64,000 nt of DNA from Macrostomum hystrix (lineage: Eukaryota; Animalia; Platyhelminthes), in NCBI GenBank assembly GCA_950097015.1, contig CATNEN010000002.1, forward strand, positions 5,084,001 to 5,148,000, written 5' to 3'. The position numbers were made by a program, and so were the translations under genes. A model generated the notes under the pieces. It did not search any database. It was not told the origin of the DNA and saw only the letters and a program-made list of their open reading frames with translations. Shown piece by piece: positions 3,987-43,823 of the stretch. Position 1 is the stretch's first letter. Each line of letters starts with the position of its first letter.

Positions 3987-5611
3987 TTAAAGCATCAGCA
4001 TCTCGAACTCCATCAGAGAATAAGAATAACCATAATTGAGATTCCAGATGATTCCCTGCGCATAAGAACCATTAATGGCTATGGAGCTATCCTTGTATAC
4101 TCCGTTCGGGTTGGTGCAGTGGCAGCTTCTAAACCACCAGGCGCCTCGAAAAAAAGCCGCACAATTGTTTTCATCTAAATTGTCGTTATCATCATCCATC
4201 GTGCTGAACTTCTGGCCATGGCCGTTAGAGAAGCAGTCTCCGATACCAGGACTGGCTGAGAAGCCGGAAACTGACAGAGGGTATTTGTAACCTGCCGGAC
4301 CAACAGACGCGCTGGAGTACTCAGCCCAGCCCACTGGGCCGTTCCACGGCGTCATCAGAAATCTCACCTTTCTGGGCGTAAATGAAGTCAGCGAGTGCAA
4401 CACATTCAGACCTGCAATTTCAGGTGAGCTATGCTCAGCAGATTAGAAACTCTTGTGTCACTGATGGCTAAATGCCTCAGTATTGAACCTGACATTATAA
4501 AAAGCCGAGGCAAAGCACACAATTACTCTGGACCTTCAGTTCAAGCTTCTCAAACTCGTTGACTCACTCTTATTCGGTGTAGACTTTAGTTAGCAACAAA
4601 AACGTGTACTTAGCGATTCGGGGTATATAATACCTTGATCGAATTACGAAACTCGCGCGAATATTAAGGGTGAGGGCAGGGGTGGGTGAAAGTGAGAGAA
4701 AAAGAGCCAATCACGAGAGCAGGGGGTGGGTGACATTGAGAGAAGTAGAGAGCCAATCACGAGAGCAGGGGGTGGGTGACATTGAGAGAAGTAGAGAGCC
4801 AATCACGAGAGCAGGGGGTGGGTGACATTGAGAGAAGTAGAGAGCCAATCACGAGAGCAGGGGGTGGGTGACAGTGAGAGAAGTAGAGAGCCAATCACGA
4901 GAGCAGGGGGTGGGTGACAGTGAGAGAAGTAGAGAGCCAATCACGAAAGCAGGGGTGAGAAAAAGCGATTGGAGTACGAGAATATCGTACTCCAATAACC
5001 AGGCAAGTTAGTGGTTAGTGGCTTCGAACAGGGCGCTCGCTACTGCAAGTGAAGGGCGAGATTCACTGAAAGCCGTAAATCATACCAATCCAGTAGTTTC
5101 CGTCGGGTCCCTCGCCGAACTCGCTCTGGTACTGAGTCCAGTTGCGATAAAAGTCCACCGAACCGGACACCCTGTGCTGCACGGTGGCCCAGCAGTCAGT
5201 GCTAAATGTCTGCAATGCGGCATGCGTAAAGAATAAGCTGGTAGATTTTACTAGCCTCAATAGGAAAAATGTTCTCAAAACACGCACCCAAACTTGTTCA
5301 GTTCCCTTGTTCAAATTGCGGCACTTCCTGCAGTGACTCAGGCCCAGACGACACCTAAAGTGAGTGCACAGGCTGGAGCTCGCGTTGAAGGTCGCCAGCT
5401 GCACAGCGGAGTCGCTGCTGGCAGCGGTTAAACATGCGATTCTGGTGGCATCAGCGTATGACTTCGCAACCTCATAGTCGGACATTCTCTCGCGGCTCAG
5501 CCACCACCTTCGCTCCGACGTCACGGCTCGTCCGGGTGAGGGAGCGAAGACAGCCAGAAGCAGCAGAAATGCCGCTTTCAATGCGTAGTTTTTCTGCAAG
5601 CCAGTTTTCAT
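3987..5611 (-). CDS. FReD gene A: secreted PAN-like/Cys-rich + fibrinogen C-terminal domain protein, ~290 aa, intact
   Basis: Exons 5611-5288, 5209-5086 and 4411-3987; GT-AG introns in phase 0 and 1. Hydrophobic signal peptide; [16 protein letters not shown]; [19 protein letters not shown]...NYWIG; FSTMDDDND..NCA..GAWWF.SC..NPNG; GIIW. Confidence 0.9.
4531..4966. mobile_element. MITE-like element in intron 2 of gene A carrying a 46-bp tandem array (~4700-4950, ~6 copies)
   Basis: Starts near GCTTCTCAAACT and ends AAAGCAGGGGTGAGAAA. The same ends and one copy of the internal GGGGTGGGTGACAGTGA..AGCCAAT motif recur at 20890-21197. The array (AGAGCCAATCACGAGAGCAGGGGGTGGGTGACATTGAGAGAAGTAG) is certain; the transposon class (hAT/Charlie-like ends) is tentative. 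Confidence 0.45.
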
Positions 5612-6049
5612 TGCGCAAGGCTTTTGTCACTAAGTCTCGTCTCAGTGTCAGGCTTTATCAGCAACAATCAACTCCCTCGGTTAATTTCGTTTCCGTCAAG
5701 AAACTGTTTGGCCAACAATGAAAACTTTGTTTGCTTTTGAGTCCAGTTGAGCTGAGTTCTGCGAATCCTGCCTTGGTGTCTTAGTTTCAGATGCATTGCT
5801 AACTTCCGCTAAGTCTATATTTCTTTGTTTTGTCTCAGCAGCCATCAGCAGACTATCAGATCCATTGTTCCTTGGAAGCTATTGCGGAAATCGGCAAAAC
5901 AATCCAATGACAGATCGGGGCTTAAGATCGAATACGAGTCCTGAAAATTACGTCCTGAGGATTTTTATAGCAAAAATTCATTTTTGACAACCTTTGCATT
6001 TAGCATTTGCCACCTTAGGAAAAAAGAACGCGGCTTCTATGGTCTCTTA

Positions 6050-6390
6050 GATAGCATTGAGCCCATGCAGGTAGTATTCAACGCAGGTAACATTCAGCAA
6101 CGATAGCATTGAGCCCATGCTGGTAGTATTCAACGCAGGTAACATTCAGCAACGATAGCATTGAGCCCATGCAGGTAGCATTCAACGCAGGTAACATTCA
6201 GCAACGATAGCATTGAGCCCATGTTGGTAGTATTCAACGCAGGTAACATTCAGCAACGATAGCATTGAGATGAGCATTTGATCGTGATTAGCATTGCTCA
6301 CAGGTGACATGGAGCACAGGCAACATTGAGTACAGGTAGCATTGAGCCCAGGTGACATTGAGCACAGATAACATTGAACACATGTAGCAT
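6050..6390. repeat. 52-bp tandem repeat x ~4.3, decaying into ~18-bp subunits
   Basis: Unit AGCATTGAGCCCATGCAGGTAGTATTCAACGCAGGTAACATTCAGCAACGAT recurs at 52-bp spacing from ~6053, followed by degenerate AGGTARCATTGAGC units. Confidence 0.9.
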
Positions 6391-6795
6391 TCTGCTGAGA
6401 ATAGCTGAATTTAAAAGACTTTTGACGAGCAGTTCGTCAGTAGTTTATTAAATCGTCGATTTAATTCCTGATAAGGTGTGCAAATATTTTGGGACGCATC
6501 TGTCAATTTAAGTTTCCAGTGGTTAATTCATTTCTGGACTAGTTAAACACAGTGGGAAGGCGGAAAAGTTGGATTTCATAATTTAAATAATGAAATTTAT
6601 CTTTTTGTGCCTTCAAAACAGTGCTCGGCGACACAGGTAGTGCGTTACAGAAATACGGTGCAATGGGGCATTTTTACTCTCAAAAATTAAAACCGGTTTA
6701 AAAAGATTGTTTTTTTCGAGACCTTACGTCACGAGACTTTCATCTCGTCCGTCATTTTCAACTCCTTGATGATTCTCACACGCAGAATAAACATT

Positions 6796-7903
6796 TCACA
6801 GTATCAGCATTTATATCTCCTTTAATGATTAACGATAGCTGTAGGGAATTGCCCACATAATTCTTTGAGCATTTGGACCGTCGATCGCTTTAGCAAAGTC
6901 CATGTAATTTCCATTCGGATGAGCACAGTAGCACGAGCTGAACCACCAGCCACCTGGATACCGTACAGCACAGCTGGTCGCATAAGAATCATGATCAAAG
7001 TCGAAGGTGGTGAACTGAAGGCCAGCGGTCGACAGGCAGTCTCAGACTCCGACAGAGGCAGAAAATCCGCGCAGCCAGAGCGTGTAGTTTGTAGACTCAG
7101 GACCCACGGCGAAGCTTGAGTACTCAGCCCAGCTCTCGGTGTCATTCCACAGCTTCATCAGGACTCGCAGCTTCCGACTTCCAGACTTGGTCATTGCGTA
7201 CAAAGAGTTCAATTCTCAATTGGAAAAGATTGGAGAACTTTGAACTGTTCATACAAAATATGAAAATTTTAATACGATCGCACTAGTCAGACAACCATAA
7301 TGCTGCAAAGTTGATCAAAACGGTACTCAAAAGTAGAAACTTTCGTTTAATTTATTTTATTAGGTTTCGGACGAGGTGAATTTTGTATTTTTAAGCCCCT
7401 GCAGTTTAAAAACTCTTGATTACCGATCCAGTAGTTTGAGTGGGGTCCTTCGCCGAACTCATTTTGGTACTGAGTCCAGTTGCGGTAAAAGTCCACGGAG
7501 CCGGACACCCTGTGCTGCACGGTGGTCAAGCACTCACTGCTGGCTGTTTACAGGGTCGTAAATTAACGAATGGACGTTTGAGAGAGTTGCAAATGCAGCA
7601 ATAAATCTGAAAGTTCATTGCTTTTGCACTCACCCACATAATTTTCCGTCCCTGTTCCACATTGCGGCACTTCCTGCAGTGACTTAGGCCCAGACGACAC
7701 CTGAAGTGAGTGCACAGCCTTGAGCTGGCGTTGAATTCTACTAGCGGCACAGCACACGGCTGGCACATTCAATGCAGCGCATTTTATATCAATAGCAGAC
7801 TCTCCGCGGTTGGCCGCCAATAGCGACCTTCGGTGCCTTCGCTGGTTTCAATCGATGCCACTGCTTGAATGAGCACAGCCACCAATATTAGATTCAGACT
7901 CAT
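6796..7903 (-). pseudogene. FReD gene B, pseudogene
   Basis: Exons 7903-7634, 7547-7424 and 7214-6796. Stops at 7784-7786 and 7769-7771 with deletions in exon 1. Exon 2 acceptor is AA instead of AG (7548-7549). In-frame TGA at 7042-7044 (Gly in paralogues) and TAA at 6829-6831 and 6811-6813. Confidence 0.9.
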
Positions 7904-10268: not shown

Positions 10269-11418
10269 TCAGAAGACCAGCAACTCAATCTCCATCAGGG
10301 AATAATTGGAGCCGTAGGGAAAGAACCAAATGATGCCCTGAGCGTACGGGCCACTAATAGCATCGGGGAAATTCTTGTACTTTCCGTTCGGATGAAATTT
10401 GAAACACGAAGAGAACCACCAGCCACCAAAGTAGTACATGGCACAGTTTGTTGCATGGGTATCGTGATCGGCGTCAAAGGTGCTGAACTGCGTGCCGTTG
10501 TGGGAAGAAATGCAGTCTCCGACTCCGGCAGAGGCAGAAAATCGTGAAATGCTGAGCGTGTAGTTTGTAGACTCAGGACCCACAGCGAAGCTTGAGTACT
10601 CAGCCCAGCTCTCGGTGTCGTTCCACAGCTTCATCAGGACTCGCAGCTTCCGACTTCCAGACTTGGTCATTGCGTACAAAGAGTTCAATCCTCAATTGGA
10701 AAAGATTGGAGAACTTTGAACTGTTCATACAAAATATGAAAATTGTAATTCAGTCGCAATAGTCCGACAACAATAATGCTGCAAAGTTGATCCAAAAAGG
10801 TTCCCAAAACTAGAAAATGACGACACTTTCGTTTAATTAATTTTACTAAGTTTCGGACGAAGTGAATTTTGTACTTTGAAGCCCCTACAGTTTAAAAACT
10901 CTTGATTACCGATCCAGTAGTTTGAGTGGGGTCCTTCGCCGAACTCATTTTGGTACTGAGTCCAGTTGCGGTAAAAGTCCACGGAGCCGGACACCCTGTG
11001 CTGCACGGTGGTCCAGCACTCACTGCTTGATGTCTGAATGGTGAAGTTTTAAGAGTATTGTGTGCAATTTATCATGAAAACGAATGCGCATTTTTCATTT
11101 CGATACTGCCGATATACTCACCCACACTCGCTGAGCTCCCTGGTTCGCATTGCGGCACTTCCTGCAGTGACTTAGGCCCAGGCGACAGCTGAAGTGAGTG
11201 CACAGCTTTGAGCTGGCGTTGAAGGCCACCATCTGCACGGAGGAGTCGGCAGCTGCGATGCATTGCAGCTCGAACTGTACAGAAAACCGGTGGACAAGCT
11301 CGTAGTCAGAGAGACTCTCCTGACTGGATGACCAGATGAGTTCGAACGATGTGCTCAGGGCACCAACTTGAAGAACTGAAATCCCTCTGAGCAGCAGGAC
11401 TATGGCCTGGGCGATCAT
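10269..11418 (-). CDS. FReD gene C, ~280 aa, intact
   Basis: Exons 11418-11122, 11033-10910 and 10690-10269; canonical splice sites; open frame; same motifs as gene A. Confidence 0.9.
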
Positions 11419-12478: not shown

Positions 12479-13857
12479 TCACAACAAAAGCATCTCAAAC
12501 TCCATCAGTGAGTAGTAGTAGCCATAGTTCATCCTCCAAATCACTCCTTGAGCATACGCGCCCCCGATGGCAACAGAGGAATCCTTGTACACACCGTTCG
12601 GGTGCGTGCAGTGGCAGGCGCTGAACCACCAGGCGCCAACATAAGACATTGCGCAGTTTGTCGATGAACCATCGTGATCGGCGTCCATAGTGCTGAAATT
12701 CCGGCCATTGCTACTGGAGAAGCAGTCTCCAATTCCAGGACTGGCAGAGAAGCCGGATACGCTCAGGCGGTATTTATCCAGTTCTGTGCTGATGGAGACG
12801 CTGGAGTACTCAGCCCAGCTCTCCGAGCCGTTCCAGGGCTTCATCAGGATCCGCATCTTTCGCGGCGCAGGTGACGTCAACCTGTGTAGCGCGTTTAGCC
12901 CTATGGTAAAGGCAAATGCATTTGGCATTGAGAAGTGCCGAGTAACCACATAGGGGGTAAGTAGCAGAGCACTCTAACGCGTTGGCTTCCCGTACGAAGG
13001 TCCCTGAGCTCGATTCCGCAGCGAGGCCACATTCATTTGGGGCGCAGCCGCGGAGAAAAGGCTTTGGGCTTGTCGTGCAATTTACGCCCTTGAGGGCCAA
13101 CCTCCAAGGCACAGTGAAGTGTACACTGCACACTGCCTCACGATGAGAAAGTCAGGGACAGATGCCCGCAGCCCTCGTGAAATACGATCGTATCGTTTTT
13201 ACAACTAGTTACACATTAAAACGAAACGCTGTGACCTTAAAACTCTAATCACCGTAATCTAGACCCAAAATACGGAACAAATAAGCCAGACATAGTTGCA
13301 TTTGTCCTGATGGCTCAAAATGGCTCTTAAAGTAGCATCAGAAAATCTACCAATCCAGTAGTTTCCGTCGGGCCCCTCGCCGAACTCGCTCTGGTACTGA
13401 GTCCAGTTGCGGTAGAAGTTCACCGAGCCGGACACCCTGTGCTGCACGGTGGTCCAGCACTCACTGCTGAATGTCTGCAAGGTTTCAATGAACGCGCATC
13501 CAGAGCACAGTTAGAAATCAGTTTATTTTGTGTCGATTCTGCACTCACCCAAACTCGCTTCAATCCACGGTTCACACTGCGGCACTTCCTGCAGTGACTC
13601 AGGCCCAGGCGACACTTAAAGTGAGTGCACAGGCCGGAGCTGAAGTTGAAGGCCGCGAGTTGCACAGTTGAGTCTCTGCTCGCAGTTGCGATGCACTGGA
13701 CTCTGGACCGCGCTTTGAACAAATTCACGACCTCATAATCCGAGAGGCTTTCACGACTCGACCACCATTTTTTCTCCGAGGTGGCAGCTTCTGGTGCAGG
13801 ATGCAGGACTGCTGCAAGCAGCAACAGGCTAGCTGGAACTACCTGCCAGCTCTGCAT
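12479..13857 (-). CDS. FReD gene D, ~284 aa, intact
   Basis: Exons 13857-13549, 13474-13351 and 12900-12479; canonical splice sites; signal peptide [18 protein letters not shown]. Confidence 0.9.
12952..13163 (+). mobile_element. SINE family 1, 3'-truncated copy in intron 2 of gene D
   Basis: Matches the head and first ~210 bp of the 2734 copy (GAGCTCGATTCCGC..GGGGCGCAGCCGCGGAGA..CTTGTCGTGCAATTTACGCCC). Confidence 0.85.
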
Positions 13858-15440: not shown

Positions 15441-16804
15441 ATGCAGTTAGCTACTCTTCTGGTGATGCTGTTGCATGTCTGAGATCCGCTGGCGGAAGCT
15501 ACTTCAACAATCCGAATATGGCGGCTCAGCTGGGAAAGCCTTCCTGATTACGAGGTGGTGACGTCGCTGAAGGCCAGTTCTGAAGTTGAATGCGGCGCAA
15601 AAGCAGTGATTCAGTGATTAAAGTGATTCAGGCGCACTGCTCCTGCTCTTTAACTCGAGCTTCGGTCTGTGCACTCTGTGCAAGTGTCGCATCGGTCTGA
15701 GCCACTGTAGAAAGTGCCGCCGTGTGAATCACGGAGCTCAGCAAGTGTGGGTGAGTCGGCCTTTTTATCCGTTTCTTAACGTTAAGGCGATTAGTGTCGA
15801 TTGCCTCCTTACAGACGGCCAGCGAAAAGTGCTGGACCACCGTGCAGCACAGGGTGTCCGGCTCTGTGGACTTCTACCGCAACTGGACTCAGTACCAGAG
15901 CGAATTCGGTGAAGGACCTGACGGAAACTACTGGATCGGTAAAGTACACTTTCGCACAGGGTCGTTTCACAAGCTCTAAATTTCACAAACCATAACTTTC
16001 CCAAAATCTAATTCTCACAAGACTTAATTTTGACAAAGTCGAAACACCGTGTGCAGAAAATTCACAAGCACTGAAGGTTCATCATGCTATTGAGGATATA
16101 ATGAATATAGCGCTTGTGGAAGCTTGTAAAGTTTTGAGCTTTTGCTGTTCTCTGCATGCCTTTTAGGCGTCGTAAAGTTTAGGGCTTTTGAAATTTTGTT
16201 GTTGTTAAATCTGCTGAACTGCTTATTTTTTCGATGTTGTAAATATTACGGGTGATAAAATTTAGGTTGTGTGAAAGATTCTCGTTTCGACGCTCTCCAA
16301 TTAATGGTTTGTGAAGGCGACCCTTTCGTGGCTTGCCGAAGGCTCGAGATACGGTTTCCAAAGCCGCTTTCGTATTTATAGGTTTGGAGTCGCTTCACGC
16401 CCTGACTGCGTCAAATCCCCGCAGGCTGAGGTTCCTGATGAAGCAGTGGAACGGTACGGGGAGTTGGGCTGAGTACTCCAGCTTCTCCGTGGGCCCAGAG
16501 TCAGATAACTACACTCTGACAGTGCCCGGCTTCTCAGGGAGTGCCGGGGTCGGCAACTGCTTATCCTACCACAATGGAATGCAGTTCACCACATTTGATG
16601 CCGACCATGACACCTATGAGCTCAACTGTGCTGCAGCGTTTCAACGGTGCCTGTTGGTTCACGGCTTGCATATGTGCTTTCCCGAATGGACAGTACAAGG
16701 CCTTCCCGGATGCGTTAAACACAACGTTTAGTCGGGGCATAATTTGGAAATTGAAGCATGGATACTACTATTCCCTGATGGAGGTCGAGATGTTGCTTGT
16801 TTAG
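15441..16804 (+). pseudogene. FReD gene E, inverted pseudogene
   Basis: Exons 15441-15750, 15815-15938 and 16382-16804. TGA at codon 14 (15480-15482); frameshifting duplication at ~15604-15630; +1 frameshift at ~16639 (NCAAAF / NGACWF). Confidence 0.85.
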
Positions 16805-18427: not shown

Positions 18428-19939
18428 TCATAAAACGAGCAGTTCAATTTCCTTCAGAGAGTAGTAGAAGCCGTAGTTGTAATGCCAGATGATGCCCTGC
18501 GCATAATCGCCTCCGATTGCATCTGCAAAGTTCTTGTACTGGCCGTTCGGGTGGGCGAAGAAGCAGCCGCCGAACCACCAGGCTCCGACGAAGGACACGG
18601 CGCAGTTTCCGCCCCAGATGTCGTTATCTGCATCGAAAGTGGTAAACTGTTGACCATTGCTCCTATCGGACAGCGCGTCACCAACTCCACTGCTGGCAGA
18701 GAATCCCGAGACACTCAGTCTGTACTTGTCGCTAGCGGGACCGATAACAAAGCTGGAGTACTCGGCCCAGCTTTTCGATCCGTCCCAAAGAGTCATTAAA
18801 AATCGGAGCTTGCGGCTTCCGGATGATGTGAACTTGTGCAGCCAGTCTAAACCTGATGACGGGTAGATGACGCAGACCACGTGATCAAAGTAAACACCAA
18901 AATATAAGTTTCTAAGTTCTCTAAATGCTGCTGTACAGTGTAAGAGAAGTATAATCCAAATAAACTAAGGCTATGAAAGTGGAGTGGTAAATGGAAGAGC
19001 GCAGTTAACGTGGTTGCTCCTCGCACAAAGGTCCATGAGCTCGATTCAGTGGCGAGACCATGCACCTTTATTTAAGGCGCAACGACGGATAGAAGGCTGG
19101 AGGCTTGTCGTGCAATATGCACCCCTTTCCGAGTGCAAAGACTCCCAGGTTTAATGAACCCCTGTGTGCACCCCTGTGTAAGTGTGTGTTTGCGTGCAGT
19201 ATCTGTGTGCCTGTGTGCTCAGGAGTCAGCGGAACGGGCAGAATAGTCTCCTCACTGGCTGGGGGTCTAGTGTCACTAATAATACTAATGAGCTATTATT
19301 TAGTAAGTATTATTTATTAATTTATACATTTTCATTTAATACAATTATTATTTTTATTAAATACAATGTTGTCAATATGTCAAACGCCAATGATCCTCTT
19401 GCAGCAAAACACTCTACCAATCCAGTAGTTTCCGTCGGGTCCCTCGCCGAACTCGCTCTGGTACTGAGTCCAGTTGCGATAAAAGTCCACCGAGCCGGAC
19501 ACCCTGTGCTGCATGGTGGTCCAGCACTCATTGACGGTTGTCTAAAAGCACAAAAAGTTCATGTGAATCGATTCCTTGAGAATATGCAGATTGAGAATAA
19601 CAAAGGTTGATGCCATAAGAGATACGTTTAGCTCACCCATACTTGCTGGCTACCCGTGGCAATTGACCGACAACTCATACAAGATCTCAACCCCAAGGGG
19701 CACCTGAGATGATAGCAGAGGCCAGAGCTAGAGTTAAACGCAACAAACTGCACAGCTAAATCTGTGCTGGCAGCTGCAATGCAGTCAGCAAGGTTTTCCA
19801 TGGTATTCGACCTTAGAGTCTCAAAGTCGAATAGATTGGACCGACTCAACCGCCAGGTACTTTCGATCGAGCCGCATTCCGCTCTGAAATGCCAAACCAA
19901 TCCTAGAAGCAGCAACGCACTCGTCGAAGCTTGCCACAT
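18428..19939 (-). CDS. FReD gene F, ~283 aa, intact; divergent exon 1
   Basis: Exons 19939-19637, 19541-19418 and 18852-18428; Cys block reads [16 protein letters not shown]; canonical splice sites. Confidence 0.9.
18981..19290 (+). mobile_element. SINE family 1 copy in intron 2 of gene F
   Basis: Head GAGCTCGATTC; body CTTGTCGTGCAAT..GGAGTCAGCGGAACGGGCAGAAT..GGTCTAGTGTCAC; (TAA)-type tail. Confidence 0.8.
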
Positions 19940-21504: not shown

Positions 21505-22653
21505 TCAGAAAAGCAGTAGCTCAATCTCCTGCAGTGAGTAGTATCTACTGTAGGGATATCTCCAAACGATGCCATTAGCCAGTTCGCCGCTAGTAGCGTC
21601 AGCGAAGTCGTGATAGATTCCGTTCGGGTTCGCGTCAAAGCAGGACGAGAACCACCAGCCGCTGCGCACCGTGAGAGCGCAGTTGTGGATCCAGGTGTCA
21701 TGGTCAGCATCGAAGGTGGAAAATGGTTCACCGTTCGATCGACTGGCCAGGGAGTCACCGACTCCTTCACTGGCGGAGAAGCCGGACAAGCTCAGCGTGT
21801 AGTTCTCGGACTCCGAGGCCACGGAGAAGCTGGAGTACTCAGCCCAGCTTTCAGTGCCATTCCACAGCTTCATCAGGATCCTCAGCTTCCGGCCTCTGTA
21901 CTGAGTTAGAGCATGAAGCGAGTTCAAACCTGTGGGATTGATCGAAATTTTAGATTCTATTCACTGTACACAAATATCACAAAATTTGTGAGTAGTTGTC
22001 ATCCAATAGAAGTCGCGCTCTAGTCTGCAATCTGAAACACAGAATAACATCCGACTATTCAAAACAAATCAAAACAGCGACTTTTTCACAACAAAGTTTT
22101 AAAATAGCAGAATCAATTAAAAGCGGTTGCTAAAGAATTTTTTTATACCAATCCAGTAGTTTCCGTCGGGTCCCTCGCCGAACTCGACCTGGTACTGAGT
22201 CCAGTTGCGGTAAAAGTTCACCGAGGCGGACACCCTGTGCTGCACGGTGGTCCAGCACTCACTGATGATGGCGATCTGAAAGCGAAATCATGTAGATGAA
22301 TAAAGTCAGTGCTCAAGAAAGCTCATTGAGCTGTCACTCACCCACACTCGCTGAGCTCCCTGGTTCGCATTGCGGCACTTCCTGCAGTGACTCAGGCCCA
22401 GGCGACACCTGAAGTGAGTGCACAGCCTTGAGCTGGCATTGAAGGCCACCAGCTGCGCTGCGTAGTCGATTGTTGCTTCAACAATGCAGTCCATTTCCGT
22501 AGCAGTTGTGTACGACTTGGCGGCCTCATAATCTGCGAGGCTGTCAAGACTCGATCTCCATTTTCGTTCAACCGAACTGACTTCACTGGCGTTGCAGTTC
22601 AAGACTGCAGCTAGCTGGACGAGAGGAATGATCGCAATCGGATTCAGTCGCAT
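21505..22653 (-). CDS. FReD gene G, ~287 aa, intact
   Basis: Start MRLNPIA at 22653; exons 22653-22342, 22275-22149 (127 nt, one duplicated ATC codon) and 21929-21505. Confidence 0.9.
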
Positions 22654-23345: not shown

Positions 23346-23365
23346 GGCAGAGTTACCCAAAGTGG

Positions 23366-25465: not shown

Positions 25466-26766
25466 TTAAATAATCAGCATTTCAATCTCTTTCAGTGAAT
25501 AATGATAGCTGAATGGGACACTCCACATGATACCCTGTGCTTTCGGACCATCGATCGCATCAACAAAGTTCTTGTACTGCCCGTTCGGATTAGCCAGGTA
25601 GCACGATTTGTACCACCAGGCGCCAGAAAAGGACACCGCACAGTTTTCTGTCTTGGCATCGTGATCCGCATCCATTGTGGAGAACTGCAAGCCGTCGCTG
25701 TAAGTCAGGCAGTCTCCCACCCCGCGTGAAGCAGAGAAGCCTGAAATGCTGAGCGTGTAGTTTGTGAACTCGGAACCCACTGAGAAGCTGGAGTACTCGG
25801 CCCAATACTCAGTGTCATTCCACAGCTTCATCAGTACCCTCAGCTTCCGGACTGATGGCGAAGTCAGGGCATGCAGCGAGTCAAGTCCTGTAGATAAATG
25901 TGTCAATAAGATAGGGAATTTTCCGGAATCTGATTGTTGCCACTAAACTGCTATGCGCCTACCAATCCAGTAGTTTCTGTCGGGTCCCTCGCCGAACTCT
26001 CTCTGGTACTGAGTCCAGTTGCGGTAAAAGTCCACCGAGCCGGACACCCTGTGCTGCACGGTGGTCCAGCACTCACTGATGGCTGCACTTTGCAGCAGCT
26101 GAAATTGAGGCAACATTGCTTCGCAAAAGAATTCAGACAGCTTAATAATAATAATAACAATAATTGCAGGAGGGCTGTGGGCAATGGCACGTTATTTAGT
26201 GACACAAGACTACGCAGGCAAACGCTCACACAAGTGTGTACATCTGCCCTGACATTTTCATCGTCAGGCAGTATAAAATCTCACTGTGCCTTGGAGGTTG
26301 GCCCTCAAGGGTGTAAATTGCACGACAAGCCCCCAAGCCTTCTCTCCGCGGCTGCGCCCCAAATGAATGTGGCCTCGCCGTGGAATCTAACTTAGGAACC
26401 GTGGTGCCACCGACCCCCATTCAGTCAGCTTGTTTAGTGGAAAACAAGTGACTTTGAAAGCTCGCTCACCCAAACATGCTGATTTTCCCTGCTCTCACTG
26501 TAGCATCTTCTGCAGTGGCTCAGGCCCAGGCGACACCTGAAGTGAGTGCACAGCCTTGAGCTGGCATTGAAGGCCACCAGCTGCACAGTTGAGTCTTGGC
26601 TAGCAGCTGCGGAGCACTCGCTTGGAGACTCGGCGCGGTGCGACGTCCCGGCTTCGTAGCGAGATGGGTTGTCGCGGCTTGACAGCCAGACTTTAACGGT
26701 TGTTGGAGAGGCCGGCTGCAGGAGCAGTGCTAGCAGAAGAGCCAGTGAGGCATTGGCGAATCGCAT
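25466..26766 (-). CDS. FReD gene H, ~284 aa, intact
   Basis: Exons 26766-26470, 26098-25963 (in-frame acceptor TTTCAG|CTG gives 4 extra codons) and 25887-25466. Confidence 0.85.
26142..26420 (-). mobile_element. SINE family 1 copy in intron 1 of gene H
   Basis: Reverse complement of the family body, with a (TTA)n tail at 26142-26165. Confidence 0.85.
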
Positions 26767-27287: not shown

Positions 27288-27614
27288 AGGGGAGAGCAGT
27301 TGATGTGTTGCCTCTCGCACCGAGGTCCCTGAGCTCGACTCCGCGGCGATGCGACATTCATTTGGGGCGCAGCCGTGGAGAGAAGGCTTGAGGGCTTTTA
27401 TGTCATGTGCAATTTACGCCCTTGAGGGCCAACCTCCAAGGTACATAGAGAGTGCACACTGCCTGACAATGAGAAAGTCAGGGCAGATGTACACACCTGT
27501 GTGTGTGTGCTCAGGAGTCAGCAGAATGGGCAGAATTGCTTCCTCGCTGGCTACGGTTCTAGTGTCACCAAATGATGCCATTGCCCGCAGCCCTCCTTTA
27601 ATTATTATTATTAT
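27288..27614 (+). mobile_element. SINE family 1 copy
   Basis: GCCTCTCGCACCGAGGTCCCTGAGCTCGACTCC head, family body, (TTA)n tail. Confidence 0.85.
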
Positions 27615-28557
27615 CATTTTTGTTTGTTTATTATTAGTTTCGATTTCCGCCTTCAACATTTATATTACATTTATAAAATAAGCGCACACTTTTCCTGAAT
27701 TATGAACTTTTGTTTTGTTCGGCTGTTTAGTCCATGGACTGGGGGTGCCACACCCACCGTCAACTACCCCAGCTAATGCAAGCTTGCTTGCAGTACTCAT
27801 TTAATAGCTTTACTAATGAATAACATAGGTAACAATGGTCAAGACAGTGTTAACTGTGTTGTTATGTGACACAATTTTCCATTGTAGTCGAATCGAACTC
27901 TCAGCTTTCAAGTCGTGAGTTAAACCAACTTGGTTTTACATATGTATTGTTAATTTATGAAGGCCCGTTCGCAGAAAAATGGTGTATTTACAATGTCACT
28001 TATTCTCATATTATATATGTTCATAACAGCACAAATTGACAAGACAGAACAGATACAATAAAAAACCCTTTGGACTGCGCAAATTTTTATTATGTTTACT
28101 TTCCAAGACGACTTGAATCAGTATGTACGAGTAAGAATGTTAGATCGTGAAGACTTTTGTAACTTCCTTATGTATATCTATACCAAGGTTATATAATGCT
28201 TCTCCACTCTGCGTCAATAGTTATACCAAATAATAGTTTGGAACTTTTTTATTCAAGCAAGGTGAATAGTTCAAACAGGAATTTCCTTTTAAGTTAAAAA
28301 ATATTGCTGTAGAAGAAGCAGCGAAGTTCCTTTTCAAAGATATCACAAAATTGCAAAATGTTTGTATCGGGTGAACTGCATGACAGTTCGTTCATGAATA
28401 ATTGCCAGCAAAATTCTTGCATGAAATTGCTGTCGGGACAGCATAACGGCTCAGGTAATTTTAATGACGATTGATGCGTATCTGCCAGGTCAACACTTTT
28501 TCTGCTTATTGTGTCTCATTGTTGCGAACTTGACAGGTGGCATAGGGCATCGGCTTG

Positions 28558-29662
28558 TTAGTTAATCAGCATTTCTATCTCTTTAAGTGAGTAGTAGAAT
28601 CCTGAAGGAACACTCCAGATGATGCCCTGAGCATATGAGCCTCCGATAGCAATTGGAAAGTCCTTGAACTGTCCATTCGGATGAAATGCGAAGCACGATA
28701 CGAACCACCAGGCACCATTGTACATTACAGCACAGTTTCCCGAATAATAATCGTGATCAGCGTCAAATGTACTGAACTGAGTATTGTTGTGGAACGACAT
28801 GCAGTCCCCGACACCAGGAGAAGCAGAAAATCCAAAAACACTGAGCTTGTAGTTTGTAGACTCGGAACCCACGGCGAAGTTCGAGTACTCAGCCCAGCTC
28901 TCGGTGTCATTCCACAGCTTCATAAGTACTCGCAGCTTCCGATCTCCAGACTTTGTCAAGGTGTGTAGCATGTTCAGACCTGAACAGAAATTGTTTGTTT
29001 AAATGCAGCAGTTATGATCAGAAAATTCCCAAGGAACCTCCATGAAAACGAATGAGCCACAACGAAGTTAGCACTCAATCGTTACGCATAACCCCCTATT
29101 AATTTCCTTGGTCAGATGGGCTCGCGCAATCTCTCTCGCCTCTAATTTTTAGCATCATACCAATCCAGTAGTTTCCGTCGGGTCCCTCGCCGAACTCGCT
29201 CTGGTACTGAGTCCAGTTGCGGTAAAAGTTCACCGAGGCGGACACCCTGTGCTGCACGGTGGTCCAGCACTCACTGATGGCGATCTGAAAGTGAAATCAT
29301 GTAGATGAATAAAGTCAGTGCTCAAGAAAGCTCATTGAGCTGTCACTCACCCACACTCGCTGAGTTCCCTGGTTCGCATTGCGGCACTTCCTGCAGTGGC
29401 TCAGGCCCAGGCGACACCTGAAGTGAGTGCACAGCCTTGAGCTGGCATTGAAGGCCACCAGCTGCGCTGCGTAGTCGATTGTTGCTTTAACAATGCAGTC
29501 CACTTCCGTGGCAGTTGTGTACGACTTGGCGACCTCATAATCTGCGAGGCTGTCAAGACTCGATCTCCATTTTCGTTCAACCGAACTGACTTCAATGGCA
29601 TTGCAGTTCAAGACTGCAGCTAGCTGGACGAGAGGAATGATCGCAATCGGATTCAGTCGCAT
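28558..29662 (-). CDS. FReD gene I, ~285 aa, intact
   Basis: Exons 29662-29351, 29284-29161 and 28979-28558. Exons 1-2 are near-identical to gene G; exon 3 is different. Confidence 0.9.
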
Positions 29663-30857: not shown

Positions 30858-31790
30858 CCGTCCTGGGCGCTCTACGATTGAACAAGTCACCGCAATCCGC
30901 TGCGTCATTGAGACCTGCAGAACGCGTCAGCTGTCAGGTCTCAATCGGCTTCGTCGACTTCAGAAAAGCATTTGATTCTGTAATCAGGTCCGCGATTGCA
31001 GCGGGTCTGGCTCAGCACGGAGTACCCTGGCTGATCATCAAGGTGTTCATGGACTTCTCTTGCGGCTTATGCGCCTTCATTAACACCAGTGATGGCCCAA
31101 CTGAGGAATTCCTAACGACATCCGGAGTCCTCCAAGGCGACACGCTGTATCCCTTCCTCTTTGTGGTTGTGGTTGACTTCGTGTTGCGACAGGCCATCAG
31201 CGAAGAGGACAGCTTCATCCTTGCGCGCCAGCGCAGCTCTCGCTAACCGGAAGTGCTTCTCGGCTGCCTCGCGTATGCTGACGACATCGCGTTCCTGTGC
31301 CGTGACCCCGAGACGGCTCAGTGAGCCCTGCATCGCCTGGCGCTGGAAAGCTCAAAAGTCGAACTGCAGATCAACGCCACAAAGACCAAGGTGCTGTGCG
31401 TTTGCACTGCAACAAGGCCCGACCTCTACCTGCCGGACGGCGTACCTGTGGACGCCTACGATGATTTCTGCGACCTAAGGTATGTCGGTAATAAGCGCTG
31501 ACGTAACTGTGGAGATACGCATGTGTATGGCCTGGCGCGCCACGCAGCTGTTGCGCTCGATCTTCAAATCCGAGGACACTGACTTTCTCAAGCTGTCCTT
31601 GTTCCAAGCAGCAGTGCTTCTCCTGGCCTATGGCAGGAAGCGGTTCCTTTAACGCCGGCGCGCGATGCCACCATCGATGCTGCTCACCAGCTGCATGTGT
31701 GCTGCTCTCGGCATCAGCGCTAACGAGACCATCAGCAATTAAGACTTCTACGCTCGCAGCGGCAGGAAGTCGTTGTCCACCACCAGGCTA
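30858..31790 (+). mobile_element. Degenerate non-LTR retrotransposon (LINE, RTE-like) reverse transcriptase fragment
   Basis: RPGRSTIEQV, FVDFRKAFDSV, GVLQGDTLYPFLF, LAYADDI and QINATKTKVL motifs, with stops and frameshifts. Confidence 0.9.
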
Positions 31791-33475: not shown

Positions 33476-36400
33476 TCACTCCACCTGGACTGACTGGCCG
33501 ATGAGAACAGTTACAAACTGCTCATCTGGCACATCCTGGTCCAACCGTTCCGCCGCCAGATCCTTGGGCGGATCCATCGCCGCCTGATAAATTGAAGAAT
33601 TGGAAGGCTGACCCGTGCGTTCACTTGATTAGCGAACTCGAGACACCTGACAATATACAATTTTCTTACCTCACTAGTGCCCATATCGAAGGTTCCCCAG
33701 TGAATGCCGACAGATTTGGCACTATCCAAGTCTTTGTGAATCCATACGGCCTCTTTTGGTGAGACGTGCTGTGGACTGAGCAGGTGTCTGCAATCAAATG
33801 GTCACTGAGGTTTAATCTGTGTTTTAGTCTCATCACTGGGGTTTAATCAGTGTTTTGGTATCGTCACTGGGGTTTAATCTGTGTTTTGGTATCGTCACTG
33901 AGTTTTAACCTGTATTTTGGTATCGTCACTGGGGTTTAATCAGTGTTTTAGTATCGTCACTGGGGTTTAACCTGTGTTTTGGTATCGTCACTGGGGTTTA
34001 ATCAGTGTTTTAGTATCGTCACTGGGGTTAAACCTGTGTTTTGGTATCGTCATTGAGGTTTAATCTGTGTTTTGGTATCGTCACTGGGGTTTAATCTGTG
34101 TTTTGGTATCGTCACTGACTTTAATCTGTGTTTTGGTATCGTCACTGGGTTTTAATCAGTGTTTTAGTATCGTCACTGGGGTTTAACCTGTGTTTTGGTA
34201 TCGTCACTGAGGTTTATACTGTGTTTTGGTATCGTCACTGAGTTTAATCTGTGTTTTGGTATCGTCCCTGAGTTTAATCTGTGTTTTGGTATCGTCACTG
34301 GGGTTTAATCTGTGTTTTGGTATCGTCACTGAGTTTAATCTGTGTTTTAGTCTCATCACTGGGGTTTAATCTGTGTTTTGGTATCGTCACTGAGTTTAAT
34401 CTGTGTTTTGGTATCGTCACTGGGGTTTAATCTGTGCTTTGGTATCGTCACTGGGGTTTAATCTGTGCTTTGGTATCGTCACTGAGTTTTAACCTGTATT
34501 TTGGTATCGTCACTGAGTTTAATCTGTGTTTTGGTATCGTCACTGAGTTTAATCTGTGTTTTGGTATCGTCACTGGAGTTTAATCTGTGTTTTGGTCAAG
34601 TATCAAATACCTGGGCAGGTAGGCGCCTATTGGAATAGCCGACAGTCGCATTGGACCAAACTGCTGTCGAATCTGTTTGAACAGTCTGTCCTCGTAGCCG
34701 GTATCTCCGCCGAAGAAGCAGTTGCTGCCACCATCCGGTCTCAGAACGTAGCTGCCCCACAGGCTGCGATTCGTGTCCAACATGCTGCGAGAGCTCCAGT
34801 GCTTGGACGGAGTGAAAGTGATGGTCAGGCCGCCATCAAAGCTGGAATCGCTGCTGCCTTTTGAGCTCTGTTGTTGCGAGTTCGTATTGGAAAAATATAA
34901 TGAGACTCGTCAAGCTGTTATTCTACGAAATACCAACATAGTTAATTACAATATACGCTCGTACTCAATAATAACAGCCCACATGATGAAATTTTGTAAG
35001 CATAATTTTTTGCTGGTTTTTACCACCGGACACCTCGACGAGAATCATTGAATATCTCGACAGTGCTGATGTTTTGTGATTCTGGAAGTTGTTTCATCGT
35101 GTTCTGCATTTTTATGGCGATTAGTTGAATATTTTAAGACATACAGAAAAAAAGAAATATGTGGGCATTTGAAATACCCCTCTATGGTATTTTAGTGTAA
35201 AAAACTACTTTTTTAACACGCACAGGAAAGATTGTGCATTTGTATCACGCGGGGTGGCTTCATAATTATAACAAAAACAATCAGGCCACAGCTACAGCTT
35301 GAATTCACTAAGACTTACCGGACTTGCCTTAGCCGGCAGCTGAACATTCTCCCACCACTCTAGCTCACGGATGTTCCTACATCCCAGGCTCTGCATCAGG
35401 CGACCATCGCCTTTGGGCACGCAGAAGACTGCATTCGGCTGCAGCCTGGCGAGCTGCTGGATGGTGGCGGAGTCAAAATGGTCATAGTGGTTATGGCTGA
35501 TGCACACAGCATCCAAAGGCAGCAACTGTTCCAGGCCGCAGGGAGGCTGTCGATAGCGCAGCGGTCCGGCGAACTGGACGGGCGAGCAGCGCTGGCTGAA
35601 CACCGGGTCGAACAGGACCCGGTGCCCGGTGTCAGCGAAGGAGAACAGGCAGCAGGCGTGGCCAAGCCATGTCAGTGAGACGCCGCTGCTGGGCTGCTGC
35701 GAAAAAAGGCAAGAAAAAAACATTTGAAGACAGAAAGACTGCAACATCTTCCAAAATTATCCACAGCAACTCTCAGAGCACATGCTCGTCCCATATACTA
35801 TTTAATGTATAATTTATCGTTCATTTCGGCGCAGAGAACGCCTTGGGTGCTTGTCGTGCAATATTGACGACTACGAGCTAATTGAAGATTGCGAAGATTC
35901 TCATCTTCACACTGCCTGAAGATGAGAAAGTCAATGGCAGATGTTCACACCTATGAGTGCGTGCCTGCGTACTGTATATCAGTGTGTCACATGCTGCGGT
36001 GACAAATCCACCAACACATATTTCATTGTTAACAGTAGAACTAACAATTACCCCTTGACAATTTTTTTGTTGCACCAGGAGGGAACAATGCAAGCACACG
36101 AAACGCAAGAACACGGGCCAAATTTTTGTTGCTTAATCAATGCCAGCTCTTGAGACCGTCGAGATATTTGTTTTTTTTCTGGCCGAAGGTCAGTTTTTTT
36201 CCATTTGTGCTAGTGTATTTTCATACACCCATTTACACGAATTAGCACTGCGCCTCAGTGCGGCCTTGCCAGGCCTTCAAACTTTATCAGCATGTCATCC
36301 GAATCTGCGTCATCTCCGTCTTAGGTGGTCACCCACTTTTATCTAGACGAATTCACTGGAACTTCAAGGGCTACAACTGGTAGAAATTGTAGGCCACCAT

Positions 36401-38508: not shown

Positions 38509-41002
38509 TTAAGCTTTTCCTACGTCATGGGGCTCAACTTTCCGCCCAAACAGCAGCCGACCCAGCGATGCCGCCAGGACGAGCAGCTCGCTGAGGGTGA
38601 GAAAGCTCGCGCCGAGCCAGACTCCCAGTGCACCGCCGAAGTCGCTGAGCAGGTCGTGAATCTGGAATTTTCTCGACACAGCGTAGTGCAGCATGGTGTC
38701 GGACTGGTAGTGGATGAACACCTTTGATGAATAGGTTGGTTAGAGGAGTAAGTGTTGGAAAGTATACGTATGTTGTGATGAGTTGTCTATAATCATATAG
38801 ATGTGGTTCAAGTTTTACCTTTAAAATAACATTTTTACCTTTATAACTTTAAAATATTTACTTCCGAAAATGTCTTCCCGAATCACTATAAAATGACACC
38901 GCATATAAACGCGAACCGCCAAAAGTGCTCGTGAGAGTACCTCATAAGTTGTTTTTGCATTTTCAAATAAGAACTCACCCTAAGAAAGTACCATGAATCT
39001 GTTTTATTGTTGAGCACACCTTCCGGATAAGCATCGACAATCTCGGATGTGTCGTTAACCATCGCTTTCCTAAGAGCATTGAGAGCATTTTTCAGGTACT
39101 CCGCAGTCCTGATCTCAGACGAGTAGTTCCGATGGCCGCCAGGTGTCAGGTGGGGCCAGCCGTAGCTGTCGGCGTCAATGACGCGCTTGTACCTGACGCA
39201 GGCATCCAGTGGGCAGCCGGTCACCTTGGAGCCGTTGCAGATCGAGTTATGCTTGATTCGATTGCTGAGGTTGCGCTGAATTTCGAGAGCTCTCGCGAAC
39301 TCGGCGTCGCTGGGAAAGTCCGCCTCAAACTTGGCGCAGTCTCGATATCGGTTGGCGATCTCCGAGAAAACGATGATGCCCGAGTAGGAGCAGTTGAAGT
39401 CCCTCACAATGATCTGGGAGCACTTCAGAGCATTGCAGTGGGCCTGGCTGTAATTGATTTTGAACTTGCTTATTACATCCTCAACGAGGTAGCTGACATC
39501 ACTTGCGCAGTCACTTGAGTCTGTGTTTTCGTACATTGTTGGCGAGACCTGCAGCGAAGAACAGAACAGAACACATCATGCAGTGCTAAAATCTCGATTG
39601 CTTCAGGTTCGATTTTAACATCTTAGGGAAAAGTGTGAGTGGCAGAGCTGAAGAGCGACTATCGCACTTGGGACTAAGATCGTTTAATTTGGTGCACGGC
39701 CGCTGGGAGGTTTGGGCGCTTGTCGTGTGCAATTTACGCCCATATGACGGCTGACACCCCCAAAGGCACACTGAGAGTGTACACTGTCAGATACTGAAAA
39801 CGTCATGGCGGATATAAAGTCATCCTTGTGAATCCGAGGTTTGCATGCTCACATCGGGGTCAGCGTCGCCTTTCACCAGTGCATACAGATATTGTTATCA
39901 AATTACGGCTCATGCACACTGCCGTGAAACCACGAGTTTTTTATGCAATTTTTTTAATATTCTTACGAGTGGTGATATAAAATGTGCAATCGTGCATTTT
40001 GGTCTCGTTTGATAATGTAGTGTGGAAGAGCCTGGGGAAATAGAAAATAACATCAGAGAGCCTTTCAGTCACCTCTATGTCGTAGTGAAGGCCGTGACTG
40101 AGCTGCATGCTCTTCGTGCCAAGGACGGTGTGAGAGTTGATTGCGTCAGTACTGTCCACAAAAAACAGCTGAAGCGTATCGTCGCCGCTCTCCTGCAGAA
40201 GCAGCTTCAGCGCCTCGTTCTTTGCCCAGTCAGTTTCAAAGACGCTGTTAAGCGAATTGCTTGTCCGCGGCCGCTTAAACAGCAGCAGCTTCATGGCTTC
40301 CTGTCCAAAGGGCACCTGACTGAGCTTTAGCCGGTGAATGAGGTCCTGAAGAATCAGTCGGTAGCAGACCATGAGCTTATCGTTCACATCCGCCAGGTAG
40401 CTGCGAAAGTCGTAGCACTTTCCGTCAATCTGGTCGCCGTAAGTGAAGCCCACAATGACATCCTGGGGCCGAGGCCGCACTTCTCTGGCTATGGGCAGCC
40501 GGTAGAACAGGCGCTTGAAATGAGCCGTGTAGGACACCTGTCCCTTATCCTGACCGGCCTTCAGACTGACATTTAGGTAGCGCCTGTAGGCTGACTCCAG
40601 CTCTCTCCTAGCCGAGTCGTTCAACAGACGCAGTCGATAGGTTGAAACCAAGTCGCTGTTGCACAGTACAATGTCTGGCAGGGTTGCGGGAATGCTGACC
40701 TCCGTCATGCTCATGGTTGTGGGGAAGTTGACGTACTGTGACGTCAGCACGTACAGGTGGTACACGGACGCAACCAAACACGCTGAAATCAGCAGCATCC
40801 AGAGAATTCGAGCCCCCAGCGAGTGGGACTTGACGCACTGCCCAACACCGTGGGTGCTGGTGCTGCTGAGCCATTCCGAAATCACCAGCTTTGCGCCATT
40901 GGACGGCGACACTGAAGTACTCGCCATCTGTTGCGGCGGCTGCGGCTGCGGCTTCACCTGCAGCTGGTCATGCTGATAGAAGCCGCTGTCAGAGTTCTCC
41001 AT
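38509..41002 (-). CDS. DEG/ENaC (amiloride-sensitive sodium channel family) subunit, 3 exons, ~570 aa
   Basis: Exons 41002-40073, 39548-38979 and 38721-38509, all phase 0. STHG pre-TM1 motif, TM1, LPDIVLCN, Cys-rich thumb, TM2 LLSDFGGALGVWLGASFLTLSE with the GAS filter. Confidence 0.9.
39630..39865 (+). mobile_element. SINE family 1, old degenerate copy in ENaC intron 1
   Basis: GTGGCAGAGC..CTTGTCGTGTGCAATTTACGCCC..AGGCACACTGAGAGTGTACACTG. Confidence 0.6.
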
Positions 41003-41689: not shown

Positions 41690-41975
41690 TTATTACGCGG
41701 GCCCTTATTCGGGGCCAGATGTGCAGCCGACAGCACAGTCGCAGCTATTGCGCGGCGCATCTGAAGGCTGCGAACGGTTGTTCAGTCCATGGACTGGTGG
41801 GACGCCACACCTACCCTCAGCTGCCCCCGATAAAGTCTGGTACCCATTTAACAGCTGAACTGAACAGGTGAACTGATGCCAAGCAGAGTTAAGTGTCTTG
41901 CTTAATCAAAGTCGTGAATCGAACCCCCGACCTTTAAGTCGCGAGTCCGAAACTAATCACTAGGCTACCACCTCC
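41690..41975 (-). mobile_element. tRNA-derived SINE family 2 with a CORE/MIR-like central domain
   Basis: Head GGTAGCCTAGTGA..GGTTCGATTC, then GCAAGACACTTAACTCTG..CAGCTGTTAAATGGGTACC. Related copies at 49500-49630 (-), and degenerate copies at ~27715-27925 (-) and ~44350-44545 (+). Confidence 0.7.
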
Positions 41976-42065
41976 ATCTTCATCATTATTTTTTTCATAA
42001 ACGAATAAATCAAAGCTTCAACACGACGTCTGTCAGCTGACACAGGGTCTTCAATCGATGGTCTC

Positions 42066-43823
42066 CTAGAGAAGGAGCATCTCAACTTCCATGAGAGAAT
42101 AGTTGAAGCCGAATGGCTTGCTCCAGATGAGTCCCTGGCCAGAGCTGCTCAGAGCAGCTGGTAAGTTCTGATAAGCTCCGTTCAGCTGGGCGTTGAAGAA
42201 GCAGCTGGGTCCGTACCACCAGGCTCCGCGGTAGTGTTTGGCGCAGTCTCTCTCCGCTTCAAATGGATAGTCTTTGGTAATGAACGCGTGGCTGCTAGAG
42301 TTGGCTAAGGCATCACCGATGCCCCAACTGCCTGTAAATCCGCTCAAACTCAAATAGTAACTGGGCCCTTTTACTGAGAAGCTGGCATATTGGGCCCAGA
42401 ATTCGCTACCGTTCCACAGCTTCATCAGAATGCTCAGCTGCCGGCTCGTGTCCTTAGTCAGGCTGTCCAGATTTTTCAGTCCTGAAAATGCACTGGCTTT
42501 GTATATCTTCGTTAACATTGCGGGATTGTGCTGGGGGTGGGTGGCAGAGCGGTTTATGTGTTGCCTCTCGCGCCAAGGTCCCTGAGCTCGATTTTGCGGC
42601 GAGGCCACATTCATTTGGGGTGCACCCGCGGAGAGAAGGCTTGGGGGCTTGTCGTGCGATTTACGCCCTTCAGGACCAAACTCCAAAGCACAGTGGAGAG
42701 TGTACACTGCCTGACAATGAGAAAATCAGGGCAGATTACACACCTGTTCCTGTGTGCTCAGGAGTCAGCGAAATGGGCAGAATTGCCTTCTCGCTGGCTG
42801 CGGGTCTAGTGTCACCATATAGTGTGCCGTTGCCCACAGCCTTCCTGCAGTTATTATTTGTTTTATGCGGCTATTCATTGCCTCTGTAAATGAGTAACTG
42901 CAGCTCACCGATCCAGTAGTTTCCATTTTCATCCTGGCCAAACGGATTGTTTTTGTAGTCATTGAAGCTCCTATCGAAACTAACGCTATCCGACACTCGG
43001 TGCTGTATCGTTATCCAACAAGCTGTGCTTGTAGTCTGAAAATATTTATTTCTTTACTCAAAGTAAAAGCACTTTATAAGTTGCACCTCAAAATTTGGAA
43101 CATTTTCGGCCTGATTTGATTAATTCGATCAACGTAAACTAAGGAATTTCCCCATAGTGAACTAACTTGACAAATAATCGCACCTGTTAGTTGAGACATT
43201 GCTCCCAATCATTTCGCCAATTATCCCCCAATCACTTGGGAAATTATTTCATCGGCAGAAAAACTATCATCATCATTTTGGCAAGTTACCCCTTGTTGAC
43301 AGATCCACATTTTGTTTTTCTAGTTGTCACTGGCAAATTATCCCCCTCAGTTGAAATCCCATCAGCTGGCAGTTATTCTGTCCTGTCTGAGGTCCCGCGT
43401 ACAAGAAAGCCCATGCTGGAAGTTCGTGTGTCTAAAATTCGATCCGGACAAATCTAAAAGCTGTGCTAAACATGCATTCAGCGAGAGTGGCATTTTATTT
43501 TACAACTTTAACAGGCTTACCCAGACCGCTTGGTTTCCGCGGTGTCGGTTGCGACACTTTCCGCAGTGCTTGAGGCCCAGACGACAGCGGAACACCTGGC
43601 AGAGCCCGGTGGCCGCATCGAATGTGGACAGGTGAGCGGAGTCCTCTCGGCTGCTGACAACCTGGCACTGGACGTCCGACCTTACAGACTGGGAGTTGAT
43701 TAATTCATAGTCGGCCAGGTTGTCGAAGCTTTTCGTCCAGATTTTCGGCTGCTCGTCTGTGTTGAGCTCCTGACAATGAGCCATGCTGAATAGGATCAGC
43801 AGGAGGCACAAAATTTGGCGCAT
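42066..43823 (-). CDS. FReD gene J, ~281 aa, intact, divergent outlier
   Basis: Start MRQILC at 43823; exons 43823-43521, 43035-42909 (TTSTACWITIQHRVSDSVSFDRSFNDYKNNPFGQDENGNYWIG) and 42481-42066; same intron phases as A-I. Confidence 0.88.
42535..42862 (+). mobile_element. SINE family 1, full-length copy in intron 2 of gene J
   Basis: GGGTGGCAGAGCGG head, family body, CTGCAGTTATTAT tail. Confidence 0.85.

Follow-up and report, generated by a model that had tools for sequence, protein, structure and literature searches.

A tandem cluster of fibrinogen-related genes with a putative PAN/apple-like module in the flatworm Macrostomum hystrix

A 64,000-nucleotide stretch of the Macrostomum hystrix genome (assembly GCA_950097015.1, contig CATNEN010000002.1, positions 5,084,001 to 5,148,000; hereafter the window, numbered from its first letter) carries ten paralogous loci, A to J, that encode or once encoded a fibrinogen-type domain. 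It is fairly probable that they form a tandem cluster within a larger family, confined to Macrostomum and numbering at least 50 genes, whose products would be small secreted proteins of lectin type with a PAN-like module. Such a protein would consist of a signal peptide, an ~80-residue PAN/apple-like module, a basic, Cys-containing linker (G/H-C-R-K-C-R-N) and a fibrinogen domain of the ficolin/tachylectin-5 type. The latter would begin at the B subdomain, with the PAN-like module, which would keep one of the two core PAN disulfides, occupying the usual place of the A subdomain. The P subdomain, for which exon 3 codes, is most likely a binding site for acetylated or other glycans, with the usual Ca2+-stabilised pocket, and the paralogues probably differ in ligand. 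Old tandem duplication, copy loss and gene conversion would together have shaped the cluster, conversion having kept the middle of the gene (exon 2 and the 3′ half of exon 1) almost unchanged as the two ends diverged. Free-living flatworms are models of regeneration and reproduction; to our knowledge, their secreted recognition molecules are almost undescribed, and no description of Macrostomum or flatworm fibrinogen-related proteins was found in the literature.

When the peptides of exons 1 and 3 from a single copy served as tblastn queries against the window, ten loci were recovered (E 1e-12 to 1e-60) and no further copies beyond positions 3987-43871. Eight of them are open, with 280-290 codons, and two (B and E) are disabled, as a preliminary description of this DNA had proposed. 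That description had also placed nine copies within 26 kb, which agrees with the extent of A-I (3987-29662, ~25.7 kb); J lies ~12 kb further on. All copies are on the minus strand except E, which alone is on the plus strand. Aligning the ten loci with MAFFT and reading the splice sites upheld the constant three-exon plan, with the same intron positions and phases, that had been described. Exon 1 starts at the ATG, encodes a hydrophobic, signal-like N-terminus and an ~80-residue module with five conserved cysteines, and ends in '...VW' ahead of GTGAGT, the intron being in phase 0. Exon 2 ends within the Gly codon of 'NYWIG' ('YWIG/L', phase 1), and exon 3 takes up the remaining 416-425 nt up to the stop. 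Both introns are of the GT-AG type and sit at the same two positions in all copies aligned, except for the lost exon-2 acceptor of B and the shifted one of H, which lies, in frame, 12 nt farther upstream, adjoining a repeat insertion in intron 1. An exon 2 of ~124 nt, as previously stated, applies to seven copies (124 nt in A, B, C, D, E, F and I) and not to G and J (127 nt) or H (136 nt). The splice model is supported by two full-length database proteins of Macrostomum lignano, P0002 (290 amino acids) and P0004 (288 amino acids), which carry the same exon joins ('...RVW/TAGSDCW...' and '...NYWIG/LNSLHALT...'); no record of the contig encoding P0002 was found.

The intact genes, all on the minus strand, are arranged as follows. 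Gene A (3987..5611, 290 amino acids) has exon 1 at 5611-5288, exon 2 at 5209-5086 (124 nt) and exon 3 at 4411-3987, including the stop. Gene C (10269..11418, 280 amino acids) is composed of 11418-11122, 11033-10910 and 10690-10269, gene D (12479..13857, 284 amino acids) of 13857-13549, 13474-13351 and 12900-12479, and gene F (18428..19939, 283 amino acids) of 19939-19637, 19541-19418 and 18852-18428. The exons of gene G (21505..22653, 287 amino acids) are 22653-22342, 22275-22149 (127 nt) and 21929-21505; those of gene H (25466..26766, 284 amino acids), whose intron 1 holds a repeat resembling a short interspersed nuclear element (SINE), are 26766-26470, 26098-25963 (136 nt) and 25887-25466. 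Gene I (28558..29662, 285 amino acids) follows with 29662-29351, 29284-29161 and 28979-28558, and the most divergent copy, gene J (42066..43823, 281 amino acids), with 43823-43521, 43035-42909 (127 nt) and 42481-42066. Pseudogene B (6796..7900, minus strand) retains a degenerate exon 1 ending at 7634, exon 2 at 7547-7424 and exon 3 from 7214; it has stops in exon 1, an exon-2 acceptor changed from AG to AA, and further stops at 7044-7042, 6831-6829 and 6813-6811. Pseudogene E, the sole plus-strand copy (15441..16801; exon 1 at about 15441-15750, exon 2 at 15815-15938, exon 3 at 16382-16801), is disrupted by a stop 13 codons past the ATG, by an exon-1 frameshift or insertion and by an exon-3 frameshift after 'NCAAAF'.

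Across the genome, a profile of the exon-1 module has 51 matches, 40 of which lie outside the window, and in 39 of these 40 a same-strand Fibrinogen_C match follows after a few hundred bases; Fibrinogen_C itself is matched at least 161 times. The 'ten-gene family' first described is therefore better seen as a single cluster in a family that has two gene plans and at least 51 module copies. The three-exon plan of the window recurs in further clusters, e.g. at C2:4.465-4.480 Mb and C39:19.70-19.71 Mb, and the more divergent two-exon plan has the PAN-like module in exon 1 and fibrinogen positions ~40-218 in a single exon 2; CRKCR is kept in both. The two-exon loci L001-L016 (e.g. C38:22514000-22516000 and C7:9591500-9593200) encode longer, Cys-terminated C-termini ('...ECL/ECM'). 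When the module profile was searched against 1.84 billion representative proteins, 14 of the 15 matches were M. lignano proteins, which bear only an automatic name, 'Fibrinogen C-terminal domain-containing' (UniProt). The remaining match, from an alga, was rejected as a relative, being a spurious Cys-repeat match. Judged by these profile searches, the module is found only in Macrostomum, and the earlier idea of a lineage-restricted expansion of secreted fibrinogen-related proteins stands, given module matches confined to this genus and the accompanying Fibrinogen_C domain.

In the C-terminal part, exon 3 matches Pfam PF00147 (Fibrinogen_C) over positions ~76-218 with E-values of 1e-17 to 1e-31 (8e-24 in gene A), and bit scores for the eight intact exon 3s and pseudogene E are 64-109 against a cut-off of 22. 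Exon 2, including that of gene A, corresponds to positions 30-78. In every copy and homologue the A subdomain (Fibrinogen_C positions 1 to ~37, with the N-terminal disulfide) is unmatched, the matches beginning at positions 30-42; likewise, a whole-family profile aligned to solved fibrinogen-domain chains starts at the Trp of 'CWTTVQHR', i.e. chain residue ~46. A whole-protein fold was predicted for the M. lignano homologue P0002, using a 65-row alignment of database proteins and exon-wise references. This model (mean predicted local distance difference test score, pLDDT, of 86.8) has the fibrinogen fold of B and P subdomains, superposing on ficolins, the fibrinogen gamma chain and tachylectin 5A with Z 25-28.6 and a root-mean-square deviation of 1.6-3 over 180-191 residues. 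M- and L-ficolin, MFAP4, tenascin-R and tachylectin 5A score Z 27-28.6 over 182-191 residues, and the wider set of fold matches, which includes angiopoietins, Z 26-28.6. By sequence, the nearest relatives of exon 3 are ficolins 3, 1 and 2 and tachylectin 5A, at E about 1e-21 to 1e-22 (gene D exon 3 aligned).

Aligned to M-ficolin, genes A, C, D, F, G, H and I keep the D-x-D-x-D calcium motif and the Cys pair around 'GAWWF..C', and A, C, D, F and I also keep the pocket Tyr (M-ficolin Y271, mutated as Y271F in PDB 2wnp). The residue directly after the second pocket Cys is His, Phe or Tyr, depending on the copy. Most copies thus look like competent ficolin-type pockets that differ exactly at the ligand-contact positions, so that the paralogues probably differ in ligand. 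Since the Ca2+-site and acetyl-pocket residues are conserved, a lectin role can be proposed, and the proteins are probably secreted, Ca2+-dependent glycan-binding proteins of the ficolin/tachylectin type; from these features we infer secretion, glycan binding and a part in recognising microbes or surfaces. Repertoires of this sort usually serve immune recognition. As to further cysteines, the window models of C, F, H and I have an odd number in the mature protein, which could permit disulfide-linked dimers in place of a stalk, and the exon-3 'GDC' Cys has a partner, 'CHC', in A and D only.

For the exon-1 module, the preliminary description held that it is not of the immunoglobulin superfamily (IgSF), collagen or coiled-coil type, and this is supported by Pfam searches, the translations and the predicted fold. 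A collagen reading fails for want of any Gly-X-Y run in the translations or collagen Pfam match. An IgSF reading was rejected with no Ig Pfam match and a helix-on-sheet, PAN-like fold rather than an Ig sandwich, and a coiled coil was rejected on the exon-1 Pfam search, the translations and the fold. Pfam searches of exon 1, singly and with 33 modules at E up to 10, returned scattered chance matches only. The module has no Pfam match but does not lack a fold: it most resembles a diverged PAN/apple domain in fold and feature searches.

For these, the module fold was predicted alone from a 33-row alignment headed by the gene D module (pLDDT 81.4, core >90), giving the order strand, helix, two strands, helix. 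In an exhaustive alignment to 48,161 PDB representatives, the top ten were all PAN, apple or MANEC domains with Z 4.1-5.5, namely the plasminogen N-terminal domain, the apple domains of factor XI and kallikrein, HAI-1 MANEC, TgMIC4 apple-5, the SML-2 lectin and the HGF N domain; no fibrinogen chain was among the best 50. Foldseek against the PDB gave nothing at E 0.001 or better, its low-scoring rows including TgMIC4 apple-5, plasminogen and SML-2. A shape search of the ESM Atlas found PAN_1, PAN_2, Apple and MANEC clusters at template-modelling (TM) scores of 0.54-0.67, and a language-model feature search found PAN_1 clusters at 0.90-0.91. Finally, hhalign was run against five Pfam-positive PAN_1 domains of the same genome together with the PAN-like stretch of the M. 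lignano protein P0007 (P 1e-3, probability 22%), and it set Cys31 and Cys53 on the outer PAN cysteines, the inner pair being Ala/Ser and Val/Ala. As these four individually weak lines (PDB, Atlas, language-model features and hhalign) agree, the module probably adopts a diverged PAN/apple-like fold from which one core disulfide has been lost.

After the module comes the stretch G/H-C-R-K-C-R-N, with a further Cys just before the fibrinogen Trp. Its C-R-K-C-R-N part is invariant in the 33 modules of both subfamilies (e.g. in D, 13549-13620). R-K-C-R fits the minimal R-x-x-R pattern of furin-type cleavage and is also a basic patch; it may be cleaved, bind polyanions or serve solely in disulfide bonding. 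In P0007, residues 25-100 are a PAN-like stretch with the canonical four Cys, fused to the front of a family member; P0007 is probably a merged gene model, but it places ordinary PAN modules beside the family in the sister species.

The history of the cluster can be read from pairwise synonymous divergence (dS) and the ratio of nonsynonymous to synonymous divergence (dN/dS) among the window copies. Exon 3 and the 5′ half of exon 1 are saturated, with a median dS of about 1.7-1.8, against 0.38 from mid exon 1 to the end of exon 2; similarly, the share of identical codons among identical residues rises from about 0.5 elsewhere to 0.7-0.9 in this core. The central core has therefore probably been homogenised by gene conversion. 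In G and I, the upstream region, exon 1, intron 1 and exon 2 are nearly identical (dS 0.02-0.05) but the exon 3s are saturated, which points to a recent exchange, by conversion or recombination, whose breakpoint lies near the donor site of exon 2. Exon 2, intron 2 and the start of exon 3 are almost identical between B (6796-7600) and C (10269-11040) in the locus alignment, suggesting that a dead copy still takes part in sequence exchange. Purifying selection is indicated by dN/dS values of 0.18 (exon 3) and about 0.4 (N-terminal part), and no pervasive positive selection was seen in the pairwise comparisons. A tree of exon 3 from the window copies, other genomic copies and M. lignano proteins is star-like, separating only the three-exon from the two-exon subfamily (support 100/99) and containing no supported one-to-one orthologues between the window copies and M. 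lignano. The picture suggested by these comparisons is one of old duplicates under birth-and-death turnover, with gene conversion confined to a constant core.

How firmly the proposed architecture and function can be held depends on several observations that weigh against them. The whole-protein fold is that of a modelled M. lignano homologue and not of a window protein. PAN profiles (PF00024, PF14295 and PF08276) match none of the 33 modules at E up to 10, the PAN scores obtained are low (Z at most 5.5, the hhalign probability cited above), and two of the four core PAN cysteines, the inner pair, are absent. The pocket Tyr gives way to Leu in G and to Lys in H; J has lost it by deletion and also lacks the calcium motif (Asp-x-Asp). 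Moreover, the proteins have no collagen or coiled-coil stalk and hence no visible basis for multimerisation, which gives ficolins and the fibrinogen-related proteins (FREPs) of snails their avidity. The PAN assignment in particular has a competitor, rather unlikely in our estimate, in which the exon-1 module is the family's own A subdomain, too diverged to be recognised by sequence, with two extra N-terminal strands and, in the loop whose usual sequence is DMDTDGGG, a Cys-rich insertion. The module always comes with a fibrinogen domain that begins at position ~40 of the hidden Markov model, ficolin alignments start at model residues 32-40 and extend to 191 residues, ~10-15 beyond the B and P subdomains, and the family profile aligns to ficolin-3 from position 55, inside the module. 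The spacing of Cys31 and Cys58 (26 residues) is also near that of the canonical A-subdomain disulfide, which is about 27-28 in ficolin and gamma-chain sequences. Against this, the module taken alone finds PAN/apple domains in both the PDB and the Atlas, with no fibrinogen chain among the best 50 PDB matches and the same outcome in the Atlas; neither Pfam Fibrinogen_C nor the fibrinogen sequences of the PDB align to it, and hhalign sets it in register with PAN_1.

The biological role is a separate matter from the fold. The lectin-like fold may possibly serve a non-immune purpose, in mucus, glycocalyx, adhesive or reproductive secretions or as a matrix organiser like MFAP4 and tenascin, and we regard this as the more credible of the competing views, though still improbable. 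The fibrinogen domains of MFAP4, tenascin and angiopoietins match as well as those of ficolins (Z 26-28), a multimerisation stalk is missing, selection is purifying overall without signs of pervasive positive selection, and PAN/apple domains often mediate protein-protein contacts (PMC7588048). What speaks for recognition is that the nearest sequences are ficolins 1-3 and tachylectin 5A, and that a large, clustered, pocket-variable family that is turning over (B and E) would fit the usual pattern of a recognition repertoire. That most copies are instead silent relics, open by chance or recently inactivated and alike merely through gene conversion, seems very improbable: two of the ten are visibly dead, but the other eight keep frames of 280-290 codons and intact GT-AG sites despite saturated synonymous divergence, dN/dS is 0.18-0.4, and full-length homologues are kept in M. 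lignano. We favour small secreted lectin-type proteins with a PAN-like module. A bolder version of this reading, which we consider unlikely and put forward as speculation, is that the PAN-like module structurally replaced the A subdomain to form a rigid two-lobed recognition unit, and that the converted centre (C-terminal half of the PAN module, CRKCR linker and start of the fibrinogen domain) and the diversifying ends constitute a germline constant/variable design of a flatworm recognition repertoire with 50 or more genes.

Other features of the window concern its neighbouring genes and repeats. The interval between I and J contains, in order, a reverse-transcriptase fragment (30878-31478; RVT_1, E 1e-5), an exon of a metallo-beta-lactamase-fold gene (35292-35747; Lactamase_B_2, E 6e-12) and the first exons of an amiloride-sensitive/DEG-ENaC channel gene (38886-41002; ASC, E 7e-13). 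The SINE-like interspersed repeat is ~300 bp long, with copies that are 74-90% identical, and occurs in introns of D, F, H and J as well as between genes (2773-3101, 12999-13164, 19023-19124, 23206-23271 and 24470-24666, 26099-26470, 27317-27621, 42570-42866). The copy at 23206-24666 is apparently split by ~1.2 kb of other sequence, and the one in H coincides with the shifted exon-2 acceptor. An Rfam scan of the window gave no match.

Taken as a whole, the cluster is genuine, and as an invertebrate lectin expansion it is fairly ordinary apart from its unusual front end. Its value lies in exact gene models for a large genus-restricted lectin family, in a front module that is probably a pared-down PAN/apple fold taking the place of the fibrinogen A subdomain, and in a clean example of paralogues whose constant core is converted while their ends diverge. 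Binding of microbial glycans, if it occurs, would make the proteins natural candidates for flatworm humoral immunity; if they are not glycan binders, they would illustrate how far the fibrinogen fold can be rebuilt.

Expansions of fibrinogen-related proteins with varied N-terminal partners are well known. Among them, the ficolins (M-, L- and H-ficolin) and tachylectin 5A are the best sequence and fold matches of the flatworm fibrinogen part, and most flatworm copies retain the residues of their Ca2+ motif, flanking disulfide and pocket Tyr. Unlike ficolins, the flatworm proteins lack a collagen-like stalk, and unlike both ficolins and tachylectin 5A they have no recognisable A subdomain, carrying the PAN-like module and the CRKCR linker in its place. 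The pairing of PAN/apple and fibrinogen domains has already been reported from molluscs, in FREP1/Bg179 of B. glabrata, four genes of C. gigas and some fibrinogen-related domain proteins (FReDs) of Lottia (PMC7588048). A mollusc cluster in the ESM Atlas likewise combines PAN_1, EB and Fibrinogen_C. These molluscan PAN FReDs and FREPs resemble the flatworm proteins in being an expanded family of secreted lectins with a PAN/apple module and a C-terminal fibrinogen domain. Their PAN domains, however, are recognised by Pfam and stand beside IgSF or EB modules, whereas the flatworm module escapes Pfam, is without one core disulfide, lies immediately next to the fibrinogen B subdomain and, by sequence, has relatives only in Macrostomum. 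The likeness is one of architecture rather than of demonstrated common descent. What appears to be new is the Pfam-invisible PAN-like module, its direct replacement of the A subdomain and the restriction of the family to one genus. With respect to genome organisation, there are parallels with the FREPs of snails, which carry one or two IgSF domains and an interceding region upstream of the fibrinogen domain, and with the FBNs of mosquitoes: the flatworm proteins differ from snail FREPs in having no IgSF domain (no Ig Pfam match), but share with both families tandem clustering, birth-and-death turnover and gene conversion among paralogues.

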